64,000 bases of DNA, from positions 143,521 through 207,520 of the IMG/VR virus record IMGVR_UViG_3300044701_003953; one strand, given 5' to 3'. A program made the position numbers and the translations under genes. The stretch's first letter is position 1; each line of letters starts with the position of its first letter. Under the pieces are notes generated by a model. The model had not been told where the DNA came from. It searched no databases and saw nothing but the letters and a program-made list of their open reading frames with translations. Positions 17,309-62,213 of this stretch are shown piece by piece.

Positions 17309-18592
17309 TCAGTGGAACTGCTCTTCCTCTGTGGAACCTTTGAGGGCTTGTGTGGATGCGTCAGCTTCGATGGTCGTAGTGACAGCGTCGAAGTAACCTG
17401 TGCCTACTTCCCTTTGATGCTTAACAGCTTCAAAACCACGGCTCGCATCCGCGAACTCACGTTCTTGTAACTCCACGAAAGCAGACATACCGTTCCTAGC
17501 ATAACCATGAGCAAGGTCAAACATGCCATGATTAAGAGCATGGAATCCAGCAAGTGTGATGAATTGAAAACGGTAGCCCATTGCTCCAAGTTCACGTTGG
17601 AAACGGCTAATTGTGTCTGCATCTAAGTTCTTCCTCCAGTTGAATGATGGCGAGCAGTTGTAGGCTAACATCTTACCTGGATGGTGCTTGTGTACTTGCT
17701 CTGCGAATTCCTTCGCGAATTGTAAGTCGGGCTTTCCTGTTTCACACCACACGAGGTCTGCGTAAGGTGCGTAGGCGACGGCTCTGCTGACTGCTTGATC
17801 GATTCCGTTACGGGTTCTGTAGAATCCTTCAACAGTTCTTTCACCAGTAAGGAAAGGCTTGTCGTTGTCATCAATATCGCTAGTGATAAGGTCACCGGCT
17901 TCGGCATCAGTTCGTGCAATAACAAGAGTAGGCACGCCCATAACATCACTAGCGAGGCGAGCGGCAACAAGTTTATTGATGGCTTCTCTGGTTGGTACAA
18001 GGACTTTTCCTCCCATGTGTCCGCATTTTTTAGCAGACGCTAATTGGTCTTCGAAGTGTACACCAGCGGCACCAGCTTCGATCATGGCCTTCATCAGTTC
18101 AAATGCGTTTAACACGCCACCAAAGCCGGCTTCGGCATCAGCTACGATGGGTGCGAAGAAGTCGTGATCATCTTTACCTTCCATCCACTGTATCTGATCG
18201 GCACGACGAAACGTGTTGTTGATCTTGCGGACCACGGCGGGCACAGAGTTCACTGGATACAAGCTCTGATCAGGATACATCTCTCCGGCCAAGTTGGCAT
18301 CACCTGCCACTTGCCAACCGCTTAGGTATATGGCTTTGAGTCCTGCTTTGACTTGCTGTAACGCCTGCATGCCTGTCAACGCACCCAAGGTGTTGACATA
18401 GTCCTCAGTGGTCAGTAGGTTCCATAATTTCTTGGCTTGGTCTATCGCGAACTGATCGGGATATACACGACTGCCTTGCAAGCGAACTACATCATCGGCG
18501 GTGTAGTCTCGTTTGATGCCCAACCACCTTGGGTTGGTACTCCAATCCTGTTGTATCTGATAGGCTTTCCAGCTACGAGTGTTTTCAGACAT
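17309..18592 (-). CDS. aceA: Isocitrate lyase
   Basis: KKCGHMGGK signature, [24 protein letters not shown]-terminal STEEEQFH. Confidence 0.97.
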
Positions 18593-18618: not shown

Positions 18619-18626
18619 TATTTATA
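18619..18626 (-). promoter_or_regulatory. T4-like late promoter upstream of aceA
   Basis: Exact TATAAATA followed by a GAGGAG SD. Confidence 0.6.
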
Positions 18627-18710: not shown

Positions 18711-18863
18711 TTACTGTTCTGCTGATTCTCGGCAGCTAGGACACCCGCATTCTGTACAGGAGTCGCAGTCGAGGCAACTGTGTCCGCAGTGTTTTGTGCA
18801 TCCACAGGGGCATTTTGGCAAGAGTCGTTGGTAGGCTTCGATATCATCGATGTAATTCTCCAT
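18711..18863 (-). CDS. Cys-rich metallothionein-like peptide (50 aa, not in the ORF track)
   Basis: MENYIDDIEAYQRLLPKCPCGCTKHCGHSCLDCDSCTECGCPSCRESAEQ; AAAAAGGAG SD and a TAAATA element upstream. Confidence 0.7.
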   Translation of the reverse strand: MENYIDDIEAYQRLLPKCPCGCTKHCGHSCLDCDSCTECGCPSCRESAEQ

Positions 18864-18903: not shown

Positions 18904-19443
18904 TTACTCGACTTTACCCCAACCCGTTTTGGCACGGATGGCAAAGGCCAACTCTCGCATACGACCATATTCGGGACTGCCCTTGGGATGTGGCCCTGAC
19001 TTTTTAAGTGCGTTGTAGGCTTTGACAAGTTCCGATTTGGTCTTGCCAGCATACTTGCCACGCTCTTCGGGGCCGACTTGTGTGTCTGTGCCCCATTTTT
19101 CTGCTAATGCCTTAGGGTTCTTGGCTAGAGCGATGCGATCGGCGAAAGTGACACGATCCTTGGGCGGGGCCAGTTTCGCGAGTTGTTCGCGGTCTAAGGC
19201 TTCTTGGGGTTTCTTTTCAGGGAGACCTTTATGTGGTGTCTTGGCGAAATCCTTGACATCACTTTTCTTCATGGTGCGAGCAGTTTGTTTGAGTTCCTTG
19301 CTGGCGCCTGGAATACGCTCGCCTTTTTGCATGGCATGCACCATGCCCATGTAACGCTGTTGGGCTTTGCTGACAGCACGCTCGGCCAGAGCGATTGCAG
19401 CACGCAGTTCGCGTGCCTCGTTGATGAATTCTTGGCTTTTCAT
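18904..19443 (-). CDS. Basic modular protein, probable internal head protein
   Basis: N-terminus MKSQEFINE resembles the T4 capsid-targeting sequence; contains a DUF3008-like AVSKAQQRYMGMV module; GGAGG SD. Confidence 0.6.
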   Translation of the reverse strand: MKSQEFINEARELRAAIALAERAVSKAQQRYMGMVHAMQKGERIPGASKELKQTARTMKKSDVKDFAKTPHKGLPEKKPQEALDREQLAKLAPPKDRVTFADRIALAKNPKALAEKWGTDTQVGPEERGKYAGKTKSELVKAYNALKKSGPHPKGSPEYGRMRELAFAIRAKTGWGKVE

Positions 19444-19461
19444 TACGCCCTCCTTGGCGTG

Positions 19462-19896
19462 TTATTTGAGACTTGCTCTCAACATCCAGGAGTGTTTGCG
19501 GTGTGCGTCCATGCGCTCGGCCAGGAAGTTGGCAAGACCGTCTTCCCCAGCTTCAGTGGCCATGTCAAATACACGCTTAAGGATCTTGACCATCTTGTCA
19601 GAATCTTCTAGCAGTTCTTGGCACATGTCTTCAGCGGCTAGGATAGCAGTCTCGTCATCGACCATGCTGAGCATGGAGAAGCGGGTGAACGAGCCCGGGG
19701 TATAAGAATCTAGCTTGCGTATGTTTTCCGCGAACAGATCGATGCTACCGTATACTTCTTCGTAGATACCTCCAAACAGTTCGTGGAACTGTGCGAAGTG
19801 TATGCCTTCCACGTTCCAGTGGAAGTTGTGTGCTTTTAGATAAAACGCGAACTCGGATGAGAACGCGATCTTCATGGCTTTTTTAAGCTCGTCCAT
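19462..19896 (-). CDS. dps: Dps / ferritin-like DNA protection protein
   Basis: KAHNFHWNVEG..FHELF..YEE..D..AE, HRKHSWML. Confidence 0.92.
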   Translation of the reverse strand: MDELKKAMKIAFSSEFAFYLKAHNFHWNVEGIHFAQFHELFGGIYEEVYGSIDLFAENIRKLDSYTPGSFTRFSMLSMVDDETAILAAEDMCQELLEDSDKMVKILKRVFDMATEAGEDGLANFLAERMDAHRKHSWMLRASLK

Positions 19897-19908
19897 AGTA
19901 ATCAGTCC

Positions 19909-20697
19909 TTAGATGTCGTAGCCGGATTCTTTCATCTCGGCCAAGTATTTACTGACCTCTTCAGCTGTGACACTACGGCTTTCGTTGGATCGTACTGACC
20001 AGTCTACTTTGATGTCTTTGACAGTCTTGCCTTGTTTGGCGAAATGCTGTTTGATCATGTCTGTGTAGCCTTCGTCACTGCGAAGTCTCACTGTGACTTT
20101 GCTACCATCGTCGAAAGTGACTTCGGCTTCATGATGTTCACCGGGGCGCAGGCTTTCGTTGGTTTCGATGTCACCCTCGCTATATTCGTCTACGATTTTA
20201 TCCCAAAGTATCTCGATCATCTTGTCGTGGTCGTTGATGACATCCGTCATGCCTTTTGCGGCCAACTCGTCTTTGAGTTCTTCCATCATGTTTTGTAGGA
20301 CATCTGCTGTACCTGGTCCTAAGTCACCTTCGAGAGCAGCGATCAGATCTTCTTCATCACCGCGTGTAGCCAAGGCATGTAGATCGATATCGATTTCGCT
20401 CATAAAGCCTTCCGCTACACCTTGCTCTGCGCTTTCCCTTGGGCCCATGCTCTGTAGTGTGCGTTCCACTTGTTTGACCCATCCGCTGACGTCGGAGGTG
20501 CCGATCTCTTCAGTGTCACCCACGAAGTCTGCTACGTCGTCGATGGCAGCGATCACTTTGTCGACGCCATAGGTCTTGATGAGGTCAAGGTGTTGACCCA
20601 TGATGCGACGTGCTACAGCACCGGCTACAGCATCACGGTCTTCCTTGACCACTACTCGAGTCTTGAGTCTGAATGGTCCAAATTCATCTAAAAGCAT
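19909..20697 (-). CDS. Acidic modular protein, probable internal head protein
   Basis: MLLDEF start; repeated hydrophobic-x-E|S/G sites (GVAE|G, TNE|S, SNE|S). Confidence 0.55.
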   Translation of the reverse strand: MLLDEFGPFRLKTRVVVKEDRDAVAGAVARRIMGQHLDLIKTYGVDKVIAAIDDVADFVGDTEEIGTSDVSGWVKQVERTLQSMGPRESAEQGVAEGFMSEIDIDLHALATRGDEEDLIAALEGDLGPGTADVLQNMMEELKDELAAKGMTDVINDHDKMIEILWDKIVDEYSEGDIETNESLRPGEHHEAEVTFDDGSKVTVRLRSDEGYTDMIKQHFAKQGKTVKDIKVDWSVRSNESRSVTAEEVSKYLAEMKESGYDI

Positions 20698-20699
20698 TT

Positions 20700-21044
20700 T
20701 TATTGTCCTGTCTTCTGTTGTGCTTTTTGTAGTGTATTCTTGATCTGTGGAGCAAGGGTAGGATCGGCTAATGCTTTTTCTACCGCCCCAGCGATACCTG
20801 CGGCATTGGCGGGATCTTCAGCATCTTTGTTGGGATCGATTTCGACACCAGCTCCTTTGAGTTGGTTGAGATTTTGTTTGAGTTTCTGTGCTTGCTGTGC
20901 AGCCTGCGCGGGATCAGAAGTCGTAGTTTGAGCATTGTCTGCTCCAAACTCACGCACACGCTTGATGGGTTTCTTGAATAAAGGTGTGGCTACTGTAGCG
21001 ATAGCGCCGGAAGTTGTTTCTTTGATGATGTCGGTGATTTTCAT
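20700..21044 (-). CDS. Hypothetical late protein (start moved to MKITDIIKE)
   Basis: ATG at 21044 lies 5 nt downstream of TATAAATA; N-terminus resembles a capsid-targeting sequence. Confidence 0.6.
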   Translation of the reverse strand: MKITDIIKETTSGAIATVATPLFKKPIKRVREFGADNAQTTTSDPAQAAQQAQKLKQNLNQLKGAGVEIDPNKDAEDPANAAGIAGAVEKALADPTLAPQIKNTLQKAQQKTGQ

Positions 21045-21049
21045 AACAA

Positions 21050-21057
21050 TATTTATA
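21050..21057 (-). promoter_or_regulatory. T4-like late promoter
   Basis: Exact TATAAATA. Confidence 0.65.
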
Positions 21058-21066
21058 ATCCCAGAA

Positions 21067-21372
21067 TTAAATAGAAAACTCGAAATTTGCTGGTTGATCA
21101 TTGATACGCACATTACTGATTCTCAGCATATCTCGTGGATCATTAAGTTTTTCTACCTTTAAGCGATGCGCCCCTGGCCCCAGCTTTACTGTGATCAGTT
21201 CTTCAACATAAGTGTCTTCGTGTTGCCAGACATAGGTACGTTCAGTCAAAAGATCCGAGTCCACATATATGCGATAGGCAGGTCGATACACATAAGCACC
21301 AGTTAACCCATGGGGTATATCTTCGCCGGACCAGCGTACATCAATACGTATCTCTATCTGCCGGTCATTCAT
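21067..21372 (-). CDS. Hypothetical protein
   Basis: 101-aa ORF overlapping the upstream stop. Confidence 0.6.
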   Translation of the reverse strand: MNDRQIEIRIDVRWSGEDIPHGLTGAYVYRPAYRIYVDSDLLTERTYVWQHEDTYVEELITVKLGPGAHRLKVEKLNDPRDMLRISNVRINDQPANFEFSI

Positions 21373-22702
21373 CGCTGAAAATCCCTGGTGGGATTCCTCG
21401 TGCTCCTACTCCGCCTTTTTTCCTAAGAGCGGATAGGTCTCTGTAAGCCTTTAGCAAAGCATCGAGCATGACGGGCATCGGAGATTTCTGTAACAGATAT
21501 TGTGCCTGACGAACTTGGTCGGCATCCATGCTAGACATCCTGTCTGACAGATCTTTAAAGTTATTTGCCAGTTTTTTATGTAATGTCGCGATAGTCAGGC
21601 GTCCGTACCCGGGTATCAATACTTCACTGTCGGACATTGGATTTGTGGGATCCTTAGCGTATAAACTTTCGATAAGGTTGAACGCTTTCATCATCTTTTT
21701 CAATGTATTTGTTTTTACATCAACAGTCATCGAAGTGCTGTATCTTGGATCGCGGGCCATCTTTTTATTTGATGCTACGACACCGACTCCGGCCGCATCT
21801 TCATTAGAATGACGTCGATTTAGCCAATCTTTTTCTTGGTGGGCATCTCGACCGTTTCTTCCTAATATCCTGCTGGCATTCCGGTCCCCGCGAGCTATGG
21901 CCCGGATTTCTTGATCTATCTCGCCCTTTACTGAGTCTTTGCTGATATTTTGAATATTTTTCGCTGTGCGTAACGCGATTAATGCATCACGTGCTGTACC
22001 GGCATCAGTGGTGGCACAGCCCGGAGTTCCTGCGACGCATGCGGCCACTGCCGCGGCACCGAGAGCTTGCTTCCATCCTTCGGTAACGACCAGTTTCTGG
22101 TCCATGATGTGCTTTGCTTCTTCACTATAGCGTCCAAACAAGTCGGCGATTATCTGCTTACGAGTCGCAGGGTCGGCATCTTTGTACTGCTGTCGCACTT
22201 CTGTTGCTGACCGCATAGGCGCCCCAAGAACGGTGAAGTCCACCGTAGGTACCGTTAGGATATAGCCCGTCTTGTCGAATGTATCGGCATCTTTTAGATC
22301 TGCGGGCAGAGGCTGGAAATATGTTGGGCTACCGTCTTTTTTAGTTCCCATACGGAAACGAGGATCTTCGGCCATGTCTTTTTCGCTGACCGCGAAGATC
22401 AATATAGTCGATTCTGCTGGATAATTTGCTGTTAGCTCAGGGACCTTGTAGGGTTCACGGCTTTCGATCACACGATCCATTGGCACCCCTGTGAGCGCCA
22501 TGAACACGGATTTGTCTGAAAAGTTGAAAGGACTCTTGGGGGGATCTACTTTGTTGCTGGTAGCGATGTAGACGCGATCTCGGCCAAATTTCTTGACGAG
22601 ATAGTCATACACCGCTTTATGCCCTTTGTGGAAGGGTTGGAAGCGTCCGGGGTAGACTACGACAAGATTTTGCGTGTCTTCAAATAAATCAGCAACAAAC
22701 AT
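21365..22702 (-). CDS. HxGH nucleotidyltransferase (NMNAT/PPAT-like) fused to further modules
   Basis: YPGRFQPFHKGH, SPF and RSATEVR in the first ~205 aa; unrelated modules follow LVVTE|G. Confidence 0.75.
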   Translation of the reverse strand: MFVADLFEDTQNLVVVYPGRFQPFHKGHKAVYDYLVKKFGRDRVYIATSNKVDPPKSPFNFSDKSVFMALTGVPMDRVIESREPYKVPELTANYPAESTILIFAVSEKDMAEDPRFRMGTKKDGSPTYFQPLPADLKDADTFDKTGYILTVPTVDFTVLGAPMRSATEVRQQYKDADPATRKQIIADLFGRYSEEAKHIMDQKLVVTEGWKQALGAAAVAACVAGTPGCATTDAGTARDALIALRTAKNIQNISKDSVKGEIDQEIRAIARGDRNASRILGRNGRDAHQEKDWLNRRHSNEDAAGVGVVASNKKMARDPRYSTSMTVDVKTNTLKKMMKAFNLIESLYAKDPTNPMSDSEVLIPGYGRLTIATLHKKLANNFKDLSDRMSSMDADQVRQAQYLLQKSPMPVMLDALLKAYRDLSALRKKGGVGARGIPPGIFSDE

Positions 22703-22723: not shown

Positions 22724-22731
22724 TATTTATG
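22724..22731 (-). promoter_or_regulatory. Late promoter (CATAAATA)
   Basis: TAAATA core in the intergenic gap upstream of 22702. Confidence 0.55.
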
Positions 22732-24272: not shown

Positions 24273-25019
24273 TTATTCTACCGTCACGATCTCGTGGACA
24301 TTTGTGATTATGCCCGGGCTGATCAACTCAACGAATGTGTTTATCGAAATATCGTTGGTGTAATAATATACTCCCCAAAATGAAGAGTAAGACGAAGACA
24401 GCATTTTCCTTGGTGCCGCGGGCAGGCTGACAAGGTCCTCCATCGAAAGCAGGTAATTCAATAAGCTAGATTTCGATGCGGTATCTAATCTACCATCTCG
24501 TAACAATACTTTATAACGGTATTGGTTCCTTCGTGATTTCCTGAGTATCTTGTTTTCTTGTAACATCGGGATATGTTCAGGGCGTGGCACGCTGATAGAA
24601 AACACTCGCGACTGATCGACAGCAGTAAAATGCTCGATCACTTTTTTCAATGAGGTTTCATCCTCTGCGTAGACTTGTATGTACGGTTCTTCGACCCTTA
24701 ACTTGATAGTGTCATCTTTGAGCAGATCCTTGAACACTTCAAGCTGTGCGAGACTAGATTGGTCGAGCGATTTATTGTTACGATATATCCAGCTACCGCC
24801 ATGGTTCCTATGTACCACTCGTGTGTTTATAGATGATGATATATCCTCGTCGTGGATGGCCCTGCCGCCGGGGCAAAACACCCTCATGCGGCACAGATAT
24901 TTTTTAAAAAATATTTTCCGTGTCTCTTCGAAGACGACGACGGAGTTAAGATTGATCCAGTACAATATATCCATTGTTGTCCACGGCTGGTTGTAGTTTA
25001 TAGTCGCCTTTAACATCAA
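24273..25019 (-). CDS. Hypothetical protein (start uncertain)
   Basis: Long ORF filling the gap downstream of clpA. Confidence 0.55.
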   Translation of the reverse strand: MMLKATINYNQPWTTMDILYWINLNSVVVFEETRKIFFKKYLCRMRVFCPGGRAIHDEDISSSINTRVVHRNHGGSWIYRNNKSLDQSSLAQLEVFKDLLKDDTIKLRVEEPYIQVYAEDETSLKKVIEHFTAVDQSRVFSISVPRPEHIPMLQENKILRKSRRNQYRYKVLLRDGRLDTASKSSLLNYLLSMEDLVSLPAAPRKMLSSSYSSFWGVYYYTNDISINTFVELISPGIITNVHEIVTVE

Positions 25020-27231
25020 AGACTACTTCATGATCGACGACACTAACTACTACTGTTGATCCCGGCGATAGCTTTTCAAACAAGATCTTCTTGCTAAGTG
25101 GGACCTTCACCATTTCGTTGATTTTGCGAGCTAACGGACGAGCACCCAACTTGGGATCATACCCAACCTCTGCGAAATAATTAACCGCGGTCTCTGTGAA
25201 ATGCACACGCAGATTCTTATCACTGAGCAGTTCATTCATTTCCGACATGAGCTTGATCACGATCTTCTTCATGCTGAGATGATCCAATTTGCCGAATTTA
25301 CAGATGCCGTCGAGTCGATTGCGGAACTCTGGCTTGAAAAAGTCTTTGACTGCTTTATCATCTTCGCCGACTTTCTGGAAATTCCTACCTATACCGATGG
25401 CATTCTTTTCTGAGTCTGCGGCACCCAGGTTGGAAGTCAATATCACGATAGTGTTGCGGCAATCGGCTTTCTTACCATTGCTGGAAGTGATCATACCCTC
25501 ATCCATGAGGTTCAGTAAGACATTAGTGACATCGGGGTGTGCTTTTTCGATCTCATCAAACAGGATAACAGAGTTAGGATTCTTCTCTACATCGCTGATC
25601 AAGAGTCCGCCACCGAGATTACTATCGTCGTAGCCTACATAGCCCGGGGGAGCACCAATCAGCTTAGATGCCGAATGCTTCTCTTGATATTCGCTCATGT
25701 CATAGCGTAATAATTTCATGCCCAAGTTATCAGCCAGGGCTTTCGCTAGTTCTGTCTTACCTGTGCCAGTGGGGCCGATAAACAGGAAATTGCCAATTGG
25801 TTTGTTGATAGCCTTGAGTCCGGCTTTGCTGACATAGATCTTTTCCAATACTTGGTCAACCACCGAATCTTGTCCAAATACACGATCTTTAATACGATTT
25901 TCAAAATCATCGACGTCCTTGATCTCGTCGCTATCTCCGATCTGATCTGCAGGAATCTTGGTAAACTTGCTGATGGCTTCTACGATCTGGCTCTTGCCCA
26001 CGATCCAATCATTGAGATGTATCTTGGATTTGGCGCAGGCTGTGTCAATAAGATCGATAGCCTTGTCTGGTAGTTTCTTGTCAGTCTGGTATCTCACGCT
26101 GAGATCTACAGCGGCATCGATAGCTTCGTCGGTAATCTTACCTCCGTGAAATTCTTCAAAGTAATTACGCAATCCTCGTAATATGTCTTTGGCCACAACC
26201 GGACTTGGCTCCTCGATCGCCAACCTATGGAATCTGCGCATAAGAGCTCGATCTTTCTCGAAACTCTGTGTGAATTCTTCCCAGGTAGTAGATGCGATTA
26301 CTTTGATGTGACCTTTGCTTAGGGCCGGCTTAATCATGTTAGCAAAGTCTACGCTGGAGTTAGATCCCGAACCGGCACCTCTCATCTGATGCGCTTCGTC
26401 AATGAATAGTATGCACTTACCGATAGCATGTAAAGCCGCGATTACTTCTTTGAGTTTTTCTTCGAATTCGCCACGATATTTGCTGCCGGCTAGTAGTCCG
26501 CCGATGTCGAGATTGTAAACAGTGAAGTCTTTGAGATAATCAGGCACTTCACCGTTGATGATGTTTAATGCTAACCCTTCGGCTATCGCGGTTTTGCCTA
26601 CACCAGGATCGCCCACCATCAAGACATTGCTCTTGTTGCGCTTGGCTAGGATTTGTGTAATTTCGGCTATCTCGACTTCGCGACCAATCACGGGATCGAT
26701 CTTGCCTTTTTCTGCCATCTCATTGAGATTGTCACAGAACTCCTTTAGTATTTCTGCTGCCTTGGCCTTGTTTGATGCCCCGGCTTCTTTTCGTTTGTCT
26801 TGCCAATTTTCGTTGTAATAGTCGACTAATCCGCTGCGGTCGATGCCGTACTTCATCAGAAAATAAGTAGCATGGCTGTTGCCTTCTTGCCATATGCTCA
26901 ACACCAAATCGATGACTTGTATATGAGTGCGTCCCGAGAATAACACCTGAGTGAATGCTCGATTAAACACACGCTCGAGCGCATGTGTTTTTTTAGGAAC
27001 ATCGTCTTTGTCTGCCGAAGCTAGATGCTCTTGTGTTGTCAAGTACATCAACAACTCGTTGGACATGCCCTCGACGTTTACACCATAATTGTTTAGAAAT
27101 TCATTAAAAGGTTTATAGGTCAAAAGACCCTGTAATAGATGCTCTACAGTCACGTATTTGTGTCGTAGTTGGCGTGCTGCTGTAGTGGCATATTCTACGA
27201 TCATTTCTATTTCAGGATTGGGTTGTATCAT
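24946..27231 (-). CDS. clpA: ClpA-type AAA+ chaperone/unfoldase
   Basis: ClpN domain (HKYVTVEHLL), GDPGVGKT, FIDEAH, GPTGTGKT, DMSEYQEKHS, FDEIEKAHP, IGI loop (ClpP-docking type), GARPL. Confidence 0.92.
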   Translation of the reverse strand: MIQPNPEIEMIVEYATTAARQLRHKYVTVEHLLQGLLTYKPFNEFLNNYGVNVEGMSNELLMYLTTQEHLASADKDDVPKKTHALERVFNRAFTQVLFSGRTHIQVIDLVLSIWQEGNSHATYFLMKYGIDRSGLVDYYNENWQDKRKEAGASNKAKAAEILKEFCDNLNEMAEKGKIDPVIGREVEIAEITQILAKRNKSNVLMVGDPGVGKTAIAEGLALNIINGEVPDYLKDFTVYNLDIGGLLAGSKYRGEFEEKLKEVIAALHAIGKCILFIDEAHQMRGAGSGSNSSVDFANMIKPALSKGHIKVIASTTWEEFTQSFEKDRALMRRFHRLAIEEPSPVVAKDILRGLRNYFEEFHGGKITDEAIDAAVDLSVRYQTDKKLPDKAIDLIDTACAKSKIHLNDWIVGKSQIVEAISKFTKIPADQIGDSDEIKDVDDFENRIKDRVFGQDSVVDQVLEKIYVSKAGLKAINKPIGNFLFIGPTGTGKTELAKALADNLGMKLLRYDMSEYQEKHSASKLIGAPPGYVGYDDSNLGGGLLISDVEKNPNSVILFDEIEKAHPDVTNVLLNLMDEGMITSSNGKKADCRNTIVILTSNLGAADSEKNAIGIGRNFQKVGEDDKAVKDFFKPEFRNRLDGICKFGKLDHLSMKKIVIKLMSEMNELLSDKNLRVHFTETAVNYFAEVGYDPKLGARPLARKINEMVKVPLSKKILFEKLSPGSTVVVSVVDHEVVFDVKGDYKLQPAVDNNGYIVLDQS

Positions 27232-27313: not shown

Positions 27314-28162
27314 TTATTGACCTTTTTTGAGTTCTTCTAACAATTCTTTCCGGTGGTGATCGGTCTCTTTGGGAATATAGACTTCGACTTCAACTAAGAG
27401 ATTCCCCCGCGCCCCATTAGTTGAGTATAGTCCTTGATCTTTGATCCTTAATTTAGTTCCGTATTGTGTGCCCGGTGGCACTGTTAATAAAAAAGTCTTG
27501 TTTTCGAGATTGGTTATTTCTCTCTGTGTGCCCAGGATCGCATCGTAGGCTGATATTTTAAGCGAGCAAACGATGTCTGAGTGATGTACTCGGAACCTTG
27601 GGTGCGGAATTAGGCGCACCAATACATAGAGATCTCCGCGCGGCAAGGTACTAAAAAAGTTGTCGCCTAACCCGGGATATTTGATCATTGATCCGTCTTC
27701 GACACCGCGGGGGATATTGATGTTGATTGTTTCTCGGTAACCATTGGTAGTTTGTATCTGTATGGTTTTTCCGACGGGATTTAAAGTTTCCTCAAGACCC
27801 AATCCCATTTCTATCCTGATGTCTTTGTTGCGCCGCGGCTGACGCATGCGTTCAAAGGGATCTTCAGAACGATTCCGGAACCCGAAGTTAAATTGAGTGA
27901 ATATGTCGTCGAGATCGGGCATACCGTCGGTGTCTTGATTCCAACGAAATTGCGGACCGCCGCCAAAACCTTTTCTTTCGAGATCGTATCGTTGTCGAGA
28001 TTCGGGATTACTAAGCACACGATATGCTTCTTCGATACGCTGGAACTCATCCGTATTACCACCTTTATCGGGGTGATGTTTGGACGCTAGGCGGCGATAG
28101 GCTTTTTTAATCTCTTCGGGCGTAGCCGTTTCGGTTACTTTAAGGGTGTCGTAGTGAGACAT
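27314..28162 (-). CDS. DnaJ/CbpA-type co-chaperone without zinc finger
   Basis: J-domain HHPDK; C-terminal RGDLYV..PHPRF. Confidence 0.9.
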
Positions 28163-32093: not shown

Positions 32094-32764
32094 CGGATAC
32101 CGGCGGCGATCCTTAGACTCTCGGTATATTCGTTTTTAGGAGCTTGAGATTCTACAGGTAGGCCGGCCGCCAGCTTGATGTCATTGATTTCTTTTTCTCC
32201 AACGCGACTAGCGTATTCGTCAGCGGTAGTTGGCACCACTTTAGAGATTTCTTCGCTAGTGACAGCGAATTCGCCGGGAACTCGATGATAATGGAAATGC
32301 CATTCGCTGATGTCTTGGGATGTGAGATTAACGAGATCATTGAGCAGGCTCACGATGTTGTCGGGCAAGTCTGCGTCTCGCTCGATCTCAACGAATACCA
32401 AGTAGTCACCGTCGTCCATCTCACCAGAGCTGACATCGGCGTCGATGACCCAGCTGTAGCCTTTTTCCACGAATGATGCCAGATCCTGTGCGGGGTCTTT
32501 GCCTGAGACTTTGAAACTGAGCACACAGACATCTTCGTCGCGGCCCATCTTGCTGCGGAACTCGTCGATGTGCAGTTCGGGATGGACTAGTCGAGCTAGG
32601 TCGCCTTGCTCGTTGCCTTCGGTGATGATGTTAGGCTGCTGGTTGTTGCTCGGCATTTTCCTGACCTTCTTCACTTTGATAGACATCCTCGTCGGCACCA
32701 GTTTCGTAGGCCTGCTCGATGTCCTCGGCGTCGATGCTTTCGCCTTCGAGCTCGAGGCTACCAC
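32090..32764 (-). CDS. Conserved hypothetical phage protein (start probably MPSNNQ)
   Basis: Long ORF with HIDEFRSKMG and DADVSSGE. Confidence 0.55.
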   Translation of the reverse strand: MVASSSKAKASTPRTSSRPTKLVPTRMSIKVKKVRKMPSNNQQPNIITEGNEQGDLARLVHPELHIDEFRSKMGRDEDVCVLSFKVSGKDPAQDLASFVEKGYSWVIDADVSSGEMDDGDYLVFVEIERDADLPDNIVSLLNDLVNLTSQDISEWHFHYHRVPGEFAVTSEEISKVVPTTADEYASRVGEKEINDIKLAAGLPVESQAPKNEYTESLRIAAGIR

Positions 32765-33170
32765 GGTGTATCTCTTGCATGAGACGCTTGGGCATGACTA
32801 TCTCGACCAGCCACACAGGAACGTGCTTCATCTTGGGCATCTTGGTGCCGGCTTCGAAATCGTCGAGGGATTCTATTTTTTGTGGCACTTCCAGCTGATC
32901 TTTTTTGTAAAACACTTCGCAGCCGTACTCTAAGAGACGCTCGCCGCCCCTGGGGTCGGGCATCATCTTGTAGGGCCACATGAACACACAAGTCACGAAA
33001 TACTTTTCGTAGTGTGGTCCCTGTACCAGCTCACCTTTTTTCCAGTTGTCAAAAACATAGATGTCGAGCTCGTCGATCACACGCTCAAAATCTAGGAGCG
33101 TGTTGAGACTGCTGTCGGTGAGATAGATCTCTCGGGTGTTTTCAATGATGTCTGCGATACTTTGTGCCAT
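32631..33170 (-). CDS. Conserved hypothetical late protein
   Basis: 179-aa ORF; CATAAATA at 33178-33185 ends 7 nt before the ATG. Confidence 0.65.
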   Translation of the reverse strand: MAQSIADIIENTREIYLTDSSLNTLLDFERVIDELDIYVFDNWKKGELVQGPHYEKYFVTCVFMWPYKMMPDPRGGERLLEYGCEVFYKKDQLEVPQKIESLDDFEAGTKMPKMKHVPVWLVEIVMPKRLMQEIHRGSLELEGESIDAEDIEQAYETGADEDVYQSEEGQENAEQQPAA

Positions 33171-34920: not shown

Positions 34921-36207
34921 TCAGATAGTGGAGATGACCTGTAGAGCAGTCCATATGACTTTGTCCCCCAGGATAAACGCGAATAGCATGGGAATAGGAT
35001 CGATGTTCTTTTTATCTAGTGCATAACCGATCGCGCTAAAAAACAAGAACAAGCAAACATATTTCAATGCTCCCAACTCTGAATAGTAGAAATCTATCAA
35101 CCCCAGGCCTGCTATCAACAACAACAGTATGAATCTAAATCTCGACTGTAGAAACAACAGGGCACGAGCATAGACGTCCAACAAACTGGTACTCAGGAAG
35201 TAGTAGATCACAGCCAGCAACACACAGGCCAGTTGTATGGTCAACAACATACGACCCACTTCTTCGAGATTGGCCAGGTCCGGCCAGTCAATGAGTTTGG
35301 TCTGCAGGATCTGTAACACTATGACTTCACCCACAGTGATGGGTATGCCCACGATCAACAACGGTAACATGCTAGTGATCATGGCCGAGTTGTTGGCCGA
35401 TTCTGCCGAAGTGACTTTTTTACTCAAATCTTTTTCGGTGTGGAACGCCAAGTTGCTGCTCAAAGTCGCCGACGGTCCTGGTATGAGCCCGATCATGCTG
35501 CCAATGACGCCGCCTTTGACAGCACTGGTCCATGGCATATCACCAATCACAGATTCAGCATTACGAGATTGCCATATTTCACTGTCATATTTTTTAAACA
35601 GCTCGGGCACGATCAACAAGCCCAAGGCCATGGAAAAAAACGTGGTGTTCTGGAAAGTCTCTTGTAAGTGATACCAGGCTTCTGGCAAAGCATAATTGTT
35701 TTTTGGGCCCAGTAGAATACCAAACATCACTAACACCAATGCCACCGGTCTGTTTTTACTGAGTAATACAAAAAACAACAATGCGAATCCGAAGATCACG
35801 GCCTTGACCCAGATTTTGTTGAACCAAAACATGAAATCGTACGACCCCAGCACAAACACAGCCACACATGCCACTGATGCAGCCACAGATGCTACCACTG
35901 ATCCACGTGCGGTGTATTTGATCAGTTTGATACGATCTTTGATGCCCAAGGGTTTGATCGAATTCAAGTAGATCAAACTCGACGTTTCGCCAGGTACACC
36001 AGTGGTTATGGCAGCCACGCTGCCAAAATACTGCGACCCAATGATCACGGCTGCCCAGTATAGGAATATGTCAAACACCGACATGAATTCCACAAACGGG
36101 AACATCAACATCATGCCCAAAGCAATAGGCATGGCCGGGAAAAGTCCTACCAACATCCCGGCCATGATTCCTGAAACAAAAGTTATGATTGTTGAAAGTT
36201 CGATCAA
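34921..36207 (-). CDS. TctA-family tripartite tricarboxylate transporter membrane subunit
   Basis: GMLVGLFP, YFGSVAAITTGVPGETSS, IGLIPG, SAESANNSA, PLLIVGIP; many TM segments. Confidence 0.85.
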   Translation of the reverse strand: MIELSTIITFVSGIMAGMLVGLFPAMPIALGMMLMFPFVEFMSVFDIFLYWAAVIIGSQYFGSVAAITTGVPGETSSLIYLNSIKPLGIKDRIKLIKYTARGSVVASVAASVACVAVFVLGSYDFMFWFNKIWVKAVIFGFALLFFVLLSKNRPVALVLVMFGILLGPKNNYALPEAWYHLQETFQNTTFFSMALGLLIVPELFKKYDSEIWQSRNAESVIGDMPWTSAVKGGVIGSMIGLIPGPSATLSSNLAFHTEKDLSKKVTSAESANNSAMITSMLPLLIVGIPITVGEVIVLQILQTKLIDWPDLANLEEVGRMLLTIQLACVLLAVIYYFLSTSLLDVYARALLFLQSRFRFILLLLIAGLGLIDFYYSELGALKYVCLFLFFSAIGYALDKKNIDPIPMLFAFILGDKVIWTALQVISTI

Positions 36208-48334: not shown

Positions 48335-49258
48335 TTATTTTCCGATCTGTGTGAGTTCTACCAGCGTGGCTGATAAGTTGATTTCTGGATCTGCTACTTG
48401 GCTGTGGTTGACCATGCCTTTGCGGATGGCCAAGATGGCTTCGTCCTGCCCTTCAGGCTTGGCGCTCCATAGTTCTAGATTGTCATACATCCAACGGAAG
48501 ATCTCTTCCATGTCGTCGATCGATGCTTGGCTGCAGATCAGTTGCCGCCCTTCTCGGATCTTGCCAGTCTTGAACATGTTTACGGCGTCTAGTTTCCAGT
48601 CCCTTACAGCGACATCTCCTTCGCCGGGTGCTTTCAGCGAGCCCGACGTCGAATTCGCTTGTACGAGATTCAAGCATTTGCGTAGATCCGGATAAGTGGC
48701 CTTGACGTAGCTGTCTAAGGTATCAAGGTCAAACTCGACTCCTTCGGTGACCAGGATAGTAGCGACACGAGCAGTGAACTCAGTGAGGTCTGTGCGATCG
48801 ATATGGAAACCCTGGCAACGACTGTGTAGGGCTGGCATGATCTTGTGCGGCATGTTACAGGTCAGGATGAATCGACATTGTGCGTGATACGTCTCCATGA
48901 GTCCACGCATGATGGCCTGTGCGTTGTGTGACAAGTAATCAGCCTCGTCCATGAGCACTACTTTGAATTCGCCAAACGGTAGTGTGCTGGCGAACCCTTC
49001 TACTTTGCTTTTAAGGAAGTCCACACCGTTATCTCGGCTGGCGTTGATCTGTAAGACATCATAGTCCTGGATACCGAGCTCGTTGATCAATACCTTGGCT
49101 AGTGTGGTTTTGCCGGTCCCAGGGGAACCGCTTAACAAGATATGAGGGATTGACCCCTCACGCACCCAAGACTCAATCTGTTCGCGTTGCCGCTCATCAG
49201 TGAAGACATAGTCTCCTAGTTTCTTTGGGCGGTATTTTTCAGTCCAGAGTTCTTTCAT
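48335..49258 (-). CDS. Clamp loader AAA+ subunit (gp44/RFC-like)
   Basis: WTEKYRP, GSPGTGKT, INAS, DEAD, SRC. Confidence 0.93.
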   Translation of the reverse strand: MKELWTEKYRPKKLGDYVFTDERQREQIESWVREGSIPHILLSGSPGTGKTTLAKVLINELGIQDYDVLQINASRDNGVDFLKSKVEGFASTLPFGEFKVVLMDEADYLSHNAQAIMRGLMETYHAQCRFILTCNMPHKIMPALHSRCQGFHIDRTDLTEFTARVATILVTEGVEFDLDTLDSYVKATYPDLRKCLNLVQANSTSGSLKAPGEGDVAVRDWKLDAVNMFKTGKIREGRQLICSQASIDDMEEIFRWMYDNLELWSAKPEGQDEAILAIRKGMVNHSQVADPEINLSATLVELTQIGK

Positions 49259-49521
49259 TTAGTACCTTTGTTGGATCGTTGATTACGGATTTTTTCTAGA
49301 TGTTCTCTTAGTTCTTGGTATTCACTGTCAGTGATGTCTGTTAGCATATCGGGGCCATGGCCAGTGAATAGAGTGAAGCTATCCTTGGAAAAGATAGTAG
49401 TTGGCTTCCAGTACTTGTTGAAAAGATTATTGATGGCTAACACGCCAATCGCTAACGCCACGACCGCCAATGCGAATAAGATCGATCCCGACAAGAATGC
49501 GGATGCTTGGTCTAGATTCAT
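49255..49521 (-). CDS. Small membrane protein
   Basis: N-terminal TM helix. Confidence 0.55.
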   Translation of the reverse strand: MNLDQASAFLSGSILFALAVVALAIGVLAINNLFNKYWKPTTIFSKDSFTLFTGHGPDMLTDITDSEYQELREHLEKIRNQRSNKGTK

Positions 49522-49685
49522 ACCATCTCCTCTACGATTCCTAGTACTTCCGCGGCGACGATCAGTCCGCCGGCTAATGCGAAATGAGAAAAGCCTAGTG
49601 CTAAGCCGGCGAGCATGCGCACACCACTCTTTACGAGGCTGACATAAAAATGACCTTTGCTAGGGTCTTTTGGTTGTATTTCCAC
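49518..49685 (-). CDS. Small membrane protein (55 aa, not in the ORF track)
   Basis: GTG start; MEIQPKDPSKGHFYVSLVKSGVR..AEVLGIVEEMV; ATGA coupling. Confidence 0.55.
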   Translation of the reverse strand: MEIQPKDPSKGHFYVSLVKSGVRMLAGLALGFSHFALAGGLIVAAEVLGIVEEMV

Positions 49686-61436: not shown

Positions 61437-61988
61437 TCAAGTACGTTGATTGATCACGGACCAATCCATGATCTTCCAGAGTGAATCGATATATTTTTTC
61501 TTGTCGCTGTGATAATCCATCTGGAAAGCGTGTTCCCACATGTCGATGATGATGACTATGCCGTCGCTGGGAATACGATGATTCTTGATTTGTTTGAGCT
61601 TGCCTTGACGATTCACATACACCCAGCCCGACCCTTGTACTTTCATGCACTCTTCAGTGATGGCTTTTTTGAAAGTGACAAAATCACCATACTCCCTGTT
61701 GATCATGTCTAGGATTCGCCCAGTGGGGCGATTACTGGCTGAACGTGTTTTGAACTGGCTAAAATAAAGATCGTGTAAGCGGGCCCCGGCTTCGTTGAAA
61801 GTGCAATCACCTTCCTTGGCATTGTAGCGGGTGACATAGCCCTTGTAGAGTTTTCCATAATGCAGTTGCATCAAGGCCGAACTCAATACAGGAGTGAAAC
61901 TGTTCATGCCCCCAGGCAGTTTGACCATTTCCAGGGTTTGGGAGTTCTTTGATTCTAGTAGATCAATGATTTCACGTATTTCATTCAT
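61437..61988 (-). CDS. Fe/Mn superoxide dismutase
   Basis: HYGK..Y, FNEAG..LH, GSGW, DMWEHAF; all four metal ligands appear present. Confidence 0.85.
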   Translation of the reverse strand: MNEIREIIDLLESKNSQTLEMVKLPGGMNSFTPVLSSALMQLHYGKLYKGYVTRYNAKEGDCTFNEAGARLHDLYFSQFKTRSASNRPTGRILDMINREYGDFVTFKKAITEECMKVQGSGWVYVNRQGKLKQIKNHRIPSDGIVIIIDMWEHAFQMDYHSDKKKYIDSLWKIMDWSVINQRT

Positions 61989-61994
61989 GATCTA

Positions 61995-62213
61995 TTATTT
62001 ATTGCGATATGTTATACGTCCTCGATTGAGATCGTAAGTACTCATCTCAACGTCAACTGTATCGCCCATGAGTATCTTGATGTTATGCTGTCTTAGTTTG
62101 CCGCCCAAATATGCGACTATGACGTGTTTGTTTTCTAATTCCACCTTGAACGTAGCATTAGGTAGTAGTTCAAGAACAGTACCAGTTACTGTGAGAGTGT
62201 CATCTCTTGCCAT
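61995..62213 (-). CDS. infA: Translation initiation factor IF-1
   Basis: [21 protein letters not shown]...I.I..GD.V.VEMS.YDL.RGRI.YR. Confidence 0.95.

Follow-up and report, generated by a model that had tools for sequence, protein, structure and literature searches.

Gene content of the region

The DNA analysed here is a stretch of 64,000 nucleotides from IMG/VR virus record IMGVR_UViG_3300044701_003953 (referred to as the window). It forms the final 64 kb of a contig of 207,520 bp with a CheckV completeness of 59%, and the only sequencing runs that contain near-identical DNA are DNA runs, from freshwater metagenomes. At positions 18,904 to 22,702, a cluster of minus-strand genes encodes proteins with short N-terminal leaders that resemble the capsid targeting sequence (CTS) of T4 internal proteins, and with internal sites resembling those cut by the T4 prohead protease gp21; a superoxide dismutase (SOD) gene with a comparable N-terminus is found further along the window. 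Four of the clustered genes have leaders (p445, p114, p262, and p179, the number being the protein length in amino acids), while p101 and a Dps/ferritin gene do not. The N-termini quoted in a preliminary description of this DNA (p179, p262, p114, p445, and SOD) were all recovered on the minus strand. The features are compiled in Table 1, where ↓ marks a putative cleavage point. Positions preceded by G000 follow the numbering of the whole contig, and L-numbers are labels of related loci, of which 80 were retrieved from IMG/VR by a search with p445.

Table 1. Positions of the clustered genes, the SOD gene, their parts and associated DNA elements in the window
Feature	Position	Strand	Description
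Late-promoter-like box	22724-22731	-	CATAAATA; 21 nt ahead of p445 ATG
p445	21365-22702	-	445 aa; leader, predicted NMNAT/PPAT-like nucleotidyltransferase, two to three C-terminal modules
p445 leader (residues 1-8)	22679-22702	-	MFVADLFE
p445 residues 9-208	22079-22678	-	HxGH nucleotidyltransferase; Pfam CTP_transf_like; ends VVTE↓G (E208)
p445 residues 209-345	21668-22078	-	low-confidence middle (pLDDT 40-66); Gly/Ala-rich hydrophobic stretch and 50-aa module (296-345); ends LIE↓S (E345)
p445 residues 346-445	21368-21667	-	C-terminal module starting right after E345; pLDDT 86-94
p101	21067-21372	-	101 aa; small conserved protein without leader, between p445 and p114; homologues in 16 loci
Late-promoter box	21050-21057	-	TATAAATA; 5 nt ahead of p114 ATG
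p114	20700-21044	-	114 aa; TTSGAIATV motif; VRE↓F at E32
p114 leader	21018-21044	-	MKITDIIKE
p262	19909-20697	-	262 aa; putative four-module polyprotein; no Pfam or PHROG match
p262 leader (residues 1-19)	20641-20697	-	MLLDEF...VVVKE
p262 module A (20-96)	20410-20640	-
Linker cassette copy	20407-20424	-	CAAGGTGTAGCGGAAGGC, Q-G-V-A-E↓G; one synonymous mismatch to consensus 18-mer
p262 module B (97-181)	20155-20409	-
p262 module C (182-239)	19981-20154	-
p262 module D (240-262)	19912-19980	-
Dps/ferritin	19462-19896	-	144 aa; without leader; Pfam Ferritin 2.8e-21
p179	18904-19443	-	179 aa; spacer from leader to LAE↓R (E21); LAE↓K (E115)
p179 leader	19417-19443	-	MKSQEFINE
p179 DUF3008	~19204-19380	-
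p179 module 116-179	18907-19098	-
TAAATA	61996-62001	-	7 nt ahead of SOD ATG
SOD	61437-61988	-	Fe/Mn SOD; PF00081 and PF02777
SOD N-terminal extension	61953-61988	-	17-19 residues, MNEIREIIDLLE↓S

N-terminal leaders

In the T4 record, ipII and ipIII start MKTYQEFIAE↓A, and ipI starts MKTFKEF...TITE↓A. The first ten residues of IPIII are enough to package foreign proteins; within the CTS, targeting depends most on residues 4 and 7 and processing on residues 8 and 10, and gp21 cleaves after Glu in L/I-x-E (PMC9026906). All 211 N-termini of the contig were scored against the T4 peptide MKTYQEFIAE, with internal windows as the null distribution. The p179 leader (MKSQEFINE↓A) was the top match, with a score reached by 5e-5 of internal windows (approximately 0.01 after correction), and MKNFQAYFFEAG, in the structural region, was second. 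The leaders of p262, p114, and p445 match more loosely and are unconvincing within a single genome. The likeness to the T4 peptide proposed in the preliminary description thus holds beyond chance for p179, while the other leaders fit a looser pattern that is enriched in the island of relatives. This pattern was found in 63 of 239 non-redundant open reading frames (ORFs) located at or after the nucleotidyltransferase gene in related loci versus 2 of 189 upstream of it (Fisher p = 1e-15). The island ORFs of the relatives start with (i) MK(T/S/P)x(D/E)F(I/V)xE; (ii) MKI(N/T/S)E(I/L)IxE; (iii) MFLDDIV...VKE; (iv) MDNNF...L(N/D)E; or (v) MRLFEF...(T/L)AE, and such leaders are kept on proteins of many unrelated mature families. 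For p114, whose detected homologues are close ones only, leaders of the same type in relatives include MKISEIVIE, MKINEIITE, and MKITEIIVE, with MKISEIITE at G000 25032-25319 on the contig itself. Approximately 35 of the nearest homologues of p445 have MF[VIL]x[DE]L[FA]E at the N-terminus, behind which come a linker varying in length and sequence and then the invariant LVVYPGRFQPFHKGH; more distant homologues start directly at the Rossmann strand, without a leader.

The SOD extension was similarly conserved. In alignment with the iron SOD of the Protein Data Bank (1e-27), residue 3 of the canonical enzyme corresponds to residue 20 here, such that the N-terminal 17 to 19 residues lie outside the SOD family proper. 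A search of viral contigs for loci related to SOD detected no relative, while a protein search of metagenomes recovered 119 homologues, many on contigs of 185-349 kb. The extension is present in 117 of these 119, with two hydrophobic residues followed by Glu at position 11-12; LLE is commonest, and the Glu precedes A, S, D, or G, mostly A or S. Two variants read MKTNDF...LNE↓A and MKSLTQLKQLVIE↓A. The leader noted earlier on SOD is hence a family-wide feature that agrees with the leader scheme, which suggests that SOD may be virion-borne.

Small basic proteins of 59-71 aa composed of a leader and TT(A/S)GS(I/V)ATV were also observed (L094, L095, L099, L125, and L171), and p114 of the window was grouped with them; their size and charge recall the T4 internal proteins.

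Internal sites and module boundaries

Seven internal sites had been named in the preliminary description, and all were located: E21↓R and E115↓K of p179, E96↓G and E181↓S of p262, E32↓F of p114, and E208↓G and E345↓S of p445. Six of the seven coincide with module borders as judged from indels, gene ends, module transfers, or AlphaFold linkers; the seventh, VRE↓F of p114, is a candidate site in a protein with close homologues only. The suggested check, whether module boundaries in homologues fall at these sites, gave indel edges at E96 and E181 of p262 and homologues that end at residues 344-345 of p445.

Most of the 100 homologues of p262 overlap residues 20-96 (module A) only, and module B (residues 97-181) is present or absent with indel edges exactly at E96↓G97 (GVAE↓G) and E181↓S182 (TNE↓S). 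Module C always opens with SLRxGE straight after Glu, although the preceding residues vary (TNE↓S, VEE↓S, VAE↓S, VRE↓S, and TSE↓S), and in some homologues an extra module comes before a conserved helix at the C-terminus, the helix beginning after SNE↓S (E239). AlphaFold predicted folded modules separated by segments of pLDDT < 50 (1-21, 87-99, 174-186, and 238-247) that hold E19, E96, E181, and E239. Across all contexts of module A, 39 of the 40 distinct windows before it and 43 of the 45 after it contain hydrophobic-x-Glu, compared with a background of 30-54%, and the sites around it prefer V/L at P3, T/A at P2, and G/S at P1'. A fold search with module A returned weak helical, helix-turn-helix-like leads (TM 0.4-0.6), and a predicted complex of the protease with p262 residues 1-110 scored 0.00, a value that speaks neither for nor against the idea. 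In several polyproteins, module A is closely preceded by a Trp-rich motif, SW.....W.SEHDQWTKE or a variant of it (L030 8255-10639, L039 8422-10401, L049, and L040).

In p179, the DUF3008 domain (residues 23-78 by Pfam) follows directly on LAE↓R, with R22 aligning to the start position of cyanophage DUF3008 proteins (RAVSKAQQRY versus MPAVSKAQQRF). The module after LAE↓K is also found at the C-terminus of the L048 nucleotidyltransferase fusion, right behind LFE↓KW. In p445, residues 9-208 are predicted to adopt a NaMN/NMN adenylyltransferase- or PPAT-type fold: the Pfam score for CTP_transf_like was 25.3 bits against a cut-off of 21, PGRFQPFHKGH and RSATEVR correspond to the (H/T)xGH and ISSTxxR-like motifs, and Foldseek matched the domain to NadD/NaMN/NMN adenylyltransferases and PPAT (E 4.5e-5, TM by target 0.5-0.6). 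Several homologues stop at residue ~204-208 and others go on with unrelated sequence, giving lengths of 202-1,316 aa. At LIE↓S, residue 344 of the query is the end of the whole protein in four homologues (L013, L017, L021, and L026), and homology stops at 343-347 in five, among them L014, L016, L024, and L035. Consistent with these borders, the AlphaFold model is confident for residues 10-205 and 346-440 and poor between. The Gly/Ala-rich hydrophobic stretch that follows VVTE↓G (residues 209-235, at 21998-22078 on the minus strand, GWKQALGAAAVAACVAGTPGC) would, if cleaved, resemble a signal/lipoprotein-like or membrane-inserting segment. Gly-zipper modules, with Pfam hits below cut-off, occur in polyproteins of relatives (L039 8422-10401 and L024 9996-11684).

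The relatives carry the modular arrangement further. ORFs downstream of the enzyme gene encode 500-1,500 aa with repeated QGVAE↓G, QGIAE↓G, and TVTE↓G-like joints, up to six to eight per protein, and G[VIL]AE[GSA] occurs 51 times in the 271,270 residues of the locus ORFs versus 3.7 expected, distributed over approximately 15 ORFs with up to six each. Modules also change context: DUF3008 is a separate gene in the window and the first polyprotein module in L039, and one basic module stands behind a leader in L049 and behind a QGVAE↓A joint in L030. Pfam analysis of the window proteins and ten polyproteins identified only DUF3008, DUF6321, weak Gly-zipper, KOW, and SutA among the modules, and neither a peptidase nor domains of the polyvalent type (MPTase, ART, MuF, and ArdC) were detected in this set.

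Head-assembly genes and putative late promoters

The contig encodes the machinery that head targeting and cleavage would need. A Peptidase_S77 protein (PF03420, gp21 family) at G000 49073-49525, within the protease gene at G000 48938-49564, scored 94.3 bits against a cut-off of 27 and received the PHROG label head maturation protease (3.5e-56). A gp23-family major capsid protein is also encoded (PF07068 Gp23, 278 bits), at 65-70% identity to those of PA5oct (Pseudomonas), Vibrio phage 2.275.O, E. coli A4/121Q-like phages, and Sinorhizobium phage Phosso. The head genes lie on one strand in the T4 order of portal, small core proteins, protease, scaffold, and capsid. Contigs of relatives extend up to 300-374 kb, and further contig N-termini look by eye like gp55, gp46, and gp47. 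Judged by these genes, the source is a freshwater jumbo myovirus, uncultivated, whose head-assembly module is of the T4 type, and this is the precondition of the packaged-polyprotein idea. As a positive control for the site motif, the protein in scaffold position carries five [VIL][AT]E[GSA] sites versus 0.13 expected.

The occurrence of TAAATA within 45 nt upstream of genes was examined as a candidate late-promoter signal. It precedes 48 of the 211 contig genes, including capsid, portal, and tail genes, compared with 0.7% of in-gene windows. The claim that late promoters stand before several genes proved correct at the level of sequence, with boxes at p445, p114, and SOD, and a (C/A/G)TAAATA box is kept upstream of nearly all p445 homologues in the relatives. 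The exact octamer TATAAATA is not enriched in the window (2 matches versus 2.15 expected); what counts is the shorter TAAATA ahead of genes. The p262, Dps, and p179 genes have no box of their own and are probably co-transcribed with p114, since they follow it closely on the same strand. The spacing from TAAATA to the start codon falls into two classes: (i) 18-35 nt with a Shine-Dalgarno sequence; and (ii) 5-7 nt without one. The second class comprises 13 genes on the contig, in the window p114 (ATG 21044), SOD (ATG 61988), and the gene at 32631-33170; its short spacing and lack of a Shine-Dalgarno sequence suggest leaderless late mRNAs, probably that of p114 among them.

A DNA-level linker cassette at module joints

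The QGVAEG joints of the relatives are encoded by a nearly identical 18-nt sequence, CAAGGTGTGGCGGAAGGC, a DNA-level feature that goes beyond the preliminary description. Rare codons are favoured within this cassette: GTG stands for Val and GCG for Ala in 73% of copies each, against 13% and 8%, respectively, in the remainder of the same ORFs. When the 80 loci were scanned with up to two mismatches to the central 14-mer, the coding strand had 45 distinct copies and the opposite strand 2; information content was 1.5-2 bits per position inside the cassette compared with ~0.1 bit in the sequence on either side. At least 120 IMG/VR stretches contain the exact 18-mer; among the matches listed, it reads Q-G-V-A-E-G in frame in 100 of 101, within ORFs of median length 548 aa (versus 28 and 18 aa for the other frames), and 20 of 53 complete N-termini of these ORFs fit the leader pattern. 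In prokaryote genomes (596 Gb) the 18-mer was detected in 56 stretches, mostly as single hits in high-GC actinomycetes, which we take as chance level. A comparison of 294 distinct cassette copies revealed 55 pairs alike in the upstream 45 nt only, 50 alike downstream only, and 1 alike on both sides, and three pairs of loci (L099/L165, L101/L189, and L096/L143) share 98-100% identity across 90 nt up to and into the cassette and are unrelated beyond. This one-sided homology (105 pairs versus 1), together with near-identical flanks that end at the cassette, marks it in these sequences as a crossover point for recent module exchange.

These findings bear on an explanation that dispenses with targeting and proteolysis, in which the joints are recombination adaptors or flexible linkers, the N-termini serve translation or stability, and the products are intact multidomain late proteins. 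Conservation of the linker at synonymous positions and its location at breakpoints exceed what protein-level selection alone would yield, and the apparently leaderless genes, with TAAATA 5-7 nt from ATG, could constrain their first codons. On the other hand, boundaries without the cassette still keep hydrophobic-x-Glu with other codons and residues (VKE↓D, TNE↓S, LAE↓K, LFE↓K, SLTE↓S, TLAE↓S, and FAE↓G), which argues that the amino-acid motif is selected independently of the DNA element. The protein in scaffold position is also enriched in sites with the same P3, P1, and P1' preference, the leader is similar to a targeting peptide that was defined by experiment, and the gene for p179, the closest match to the CTS, is not among the leaderless ones but has a strong Shine-Dalgarno sequence. 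We regard this explanation as quite unlikely; given the independent selection of the motif, proteolysis is retained as the primary reading, with recombination as an added layer.

As to that added layer, we suggest, at slightly less than an even chance, that the cassette is a selected recombination adaptor rather than a by-product of frequent exchange. With the same reserve, CAAGGTGTGGCGGAAGGC may be a dedicated in-frame adaptor within which cargo modules are swapped by crossing over, like exon shuffling without introns. Because the cassette encodes a prohead-protease site, every new chain of modules would, under the adaptor reading, be packaged through the shared leader and cut, thereby providing a built-in combinatorial evolution system for injected proteins. 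T4-type phages have PeSL elements, short conserved regulatory cassettes between genes that act as crossover points for the exchange of whole neighbouring genes between phages. In contrast to these, the cassette described here lies inside ORFs, keeps the frame, and encodes a protease-type site, and it is the part of the system furthest from anything described.

Short contigs of metagenome-assembled genomes carrying one to three 18-mers were also noted (L258, CAILDT010000116.1, binned as Bacteroidetes; L223; L240; L250; and L266). Probably these are phage sequences that ended up in bacterial bins, and they might offer a clue to the hosts.

Proposed packaging and processing pathway

The leaders and joints almost certainly represent a real, selected architecture. 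That they signify head targeting and cleavage by a gp21-type protease is, on the sequence evidence, probable, and we likewise think it likely that the region is a cargo island of a T4-related jumbo phage whose products are targeted to the head and cut there. The sequences themselves show the leaders, sites, module boundaries, protease gene, promoter motif, DNA-level conservation of the linker, and breakpoints. From these features we infer that the proteins would be targeted to the head, cleaved, packaged, and injected, and would act as effectors, as follows: (i) the cargo genes would be transcribed late from TAAATA promoters; (ii) an amphipathic leader, M-(K/R/F)-x-x-(D/E)-(F/I/L)-(F/I/V)-x-E, the putative counterpart of the T4 CTS, would bring the cargo into the scaffolding core of the prohead; (iii) the gp21-family serine protease would cut after Glu, with V/L/I at P3, A/T at P2, E at P1, and G/S/A at P1'; (iv) these cuts would take off the leader and part the modules, namely the NMNAT/PPAT-like nucleotidyltransferase, DUF3008, small helical and alpha/beta modules, and probably SOD; and (v) the modules would stay alongside the DNA inside the head and most likely pass into the host with it. 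Modules would be swapped in frame by recombination at the QGVAE↓G cassette, with any new combination still released by the protease.

Several observations weigh against this interpretation. Hydrophobic-x-Glu is present in 18% of all contig N-termini and, in bare form, in 30-37% of random 16-aa windows, with 13 occurrences in p262 alone; the motif is too common to be informative by itself, so the question becomes whether the named sites are module boundaries. The leader pattern was drawn up after inspection of the data, and a tail-tube homologue on the contig matches it too (MSINQFLKE), for which reason its use as a stand-alone classifier was rejected. Y4 of the T4 CTS, one of the two main targeting residues, is without counterpart in MKSQEFINE, and E208 of p445 lies within a helix predicted at moderate confidence. 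The window itself has a single consensus linker, and its proteins have two to four modules each. The ends of BLAST high-scoring segment pairs were enriched only about twofold at strict [VIL][AT]E[GSA] sites (11-13% versus 5%, p = 0.001-0.01); this test is supportive but blunt, and the module-specific analyses are stronger. Cultured phages yielded no match to the region by blastn or to p262 and a 794-aa polyprotein by tblastn, and only two weak matches to p445, so no cultured-phage proteome can be used directly. Cyanophage S-SCSM1 offers a parallel: virion mass spectrometry underlies the annotation of a row of genes for an NMNAT with the start MKSFLQFLKE↓A, a basic protein of 521 aa, and a DUF3008 protein of 69 aa. 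Its NMNAT is distant from p445 (pairwise E = 0.055) and its DUF3008 virion protein has no leader, such that a leader is unnecessary for virion association there. We treat S-SCSM1 as a supporting analogy and not as a case of orthology.

The frequency of the bare motif, including the 30-54% of random windows noted above, would favour the view that acidic and hydrophobic N-termini and common x-E motifs have been over-read by chance. This view is contradicted by the comparative statistics, with large departures from controls in the CTS score, joint counts, island enrichment, module A flanks, cassette, and SOD extension, and we consider it extremely improbable.

A further possibility is that the proteins are targeted and cut but constitute head-internal scaffold or inner-body material, with fragments that take part in assembly, condense the DNA, or are expelled in the manner of T4 gp22 pieces. 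Scaffold proteins fall under the same protease logic, T4 gp22, gp67, and gp68 being cut to many pieces (PMC9026906); in addition, most modules are without a recognisable enzymatic domain, and many relatives encode small basic leader-bearing proteins. Yet the island is hypervariable and shuffled, unlike conserved assembly proteins, a separate conserved scaffold gene is present, and the enzymes (NMNAT/PPAT-like fold and SOD) would have a use in a sealed head that is hard to see. As a full account of the region we find this possibility unlikely; for the products themselves, whether they are injected effectors rather than internal structural material is an even call.

If packaging and cleavage are as proposed, the T4 capsid-targeting and gp21-processing system, known from few coliphage proteins, would extend to a large clade of uncultivated jumbo phages from fresh water and other environments, and phages would be using real polyproteins that are released in trans by the head protease. 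The candidate virion-delivered proteins would include a nucleotidyltransferase, SOD, DUF3008, and dozens of small modules, a natural search ground for counter-defence, and the linker cassette would provide a concrete, testable mechanism for shuffling such arsenals. A practical annotation rule also emerges, in that a leader followed by modules split by QGVAEG would mark cargo, and the arrangement may offer an engineering route to load several proteins into a head. Phages have NAD+ reconstitution pathways (bioRxiv 10.1101/2024.02.11.579819), and a plausible guess for p445, by analogy, is an early supply of NAD+ against NAD+-depleting defences.

Comparison with known systems

At the sequence level, the island appears to share the defining features of the T4 CTS/internal-protein system. 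Common to it and to T4 IPI, IPII, IPIII, and Alt is an N-terminal peptide of 9-19 residues ending in hydrophobic-x-Glu, with QEFI-x-EA shared by p179, as well as a gp21-family protease and variable, non-essential-looking cargo genes; late expression, suggested here by the TAAATA boxes, would be a further likeness. T-even phages likewise have variable loci of CTS-bearing ORFs (PMC9026906). Unlike the T4 internal proteins, the candidate cargo described here comprises multi-module polyproteins with putative internal release sites, enzymes, and a DNA linker cassette, and it is encoded by a jumbo phage that is only distantly related. Head-internal proteins of phiKZ, 201phi2-1, and SPN3US are also cut after Glu by a gp21-like protease, at S/A-x-E with several sites per propeptide (PMC9026906). 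That type differs in belonging to another lineage, in the removal of propeptides rather than the release of shuffled modules, and in having no described linker cassette, and the present contig does not fit the phiKZ type, which is defined by a gp175-type protease and S/A-x-E sites, as its capsid and protease are of the T4/PA5oct type and its sites have V/L/I at P3.

The polyvalent proteins of phages and conjugative elements, which their authors liken to the polyproteins of RNA viruses (Iyer et al. 2017, PMC5512222), provide a second comparison. Both have unrelated domains on one polypeptide, with four in p262 and three to four in p445 (within the 2-15 domains by which polyvalent proteins are defined), and polyvalent proteins are also predicted to travel with the DNA and act early. 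They differ in that polyvalent proteins have embedded peptidases and a known domain repertoire, whereas here the prohead protease would act in trans, at a recurring motif, to release modules that are small and mostly unannotated. NMNAT-like or cytidylyltransferase proteins recur in the virion proteomes of T4-like cyanophages, e.g., S-SCSM1 and S-CBWM1 (PMC9602691); they belong to the same nucleotidyltransferase superfamily as the p445 domain, and the paper ties them neither to a targeting peptide nor to processing. Literature searches on capsid targeting sequence and cyanophage returned only the T4 review, those on prohead-protease polyproteins and polyvalent proteins found no description of this system, and the PA5oct and freshwater-jumbophage papers contained nothing on leaders or processing.

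Neighbouring genes

The island is flanked downstream by an isocitrate lyase gene and upstream by glycosyltransferase, ClpB-like, and DnaJ-like genes. The Dps gene, for a DNA-binding shell protein of iron storage, keeps a fixed place within the cargo island in 22 related loci. An exact TATAAATA at 18619-18626 stands before the isocitrate lyase gene (17309-18592, minus strand; Pfam ICL 8e-108), which is kept in L010, L011, and L015 and looks like a late auxiliary metabolic gene. Between it and p179, a Cys-rich 50-aa ORF at 18711-18863 (minus strand; CPCGC...CGHSC..C..C..C.C..C), with 70% identity in L010, may encode a metal-binding peptide. Directly upstream of SOD lies a gene for a 72-aa IF-1 homologue (61995-62213, minus strand; infA-like S1 fold by eye) with TAAATA 30 nt before its start. 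Also encoded by the phage on the minus strand are a ClpB-like double AAA+ ATPase (24946-27231), a protein that looks DnaJ-like by its N-terminus (27314-28162), and a subunit of a TctA-family tricarboxylate transporter (34921-36207), and the ClpB-like and DnaJ-like genes are syntenic with the cargo island in most relatives.

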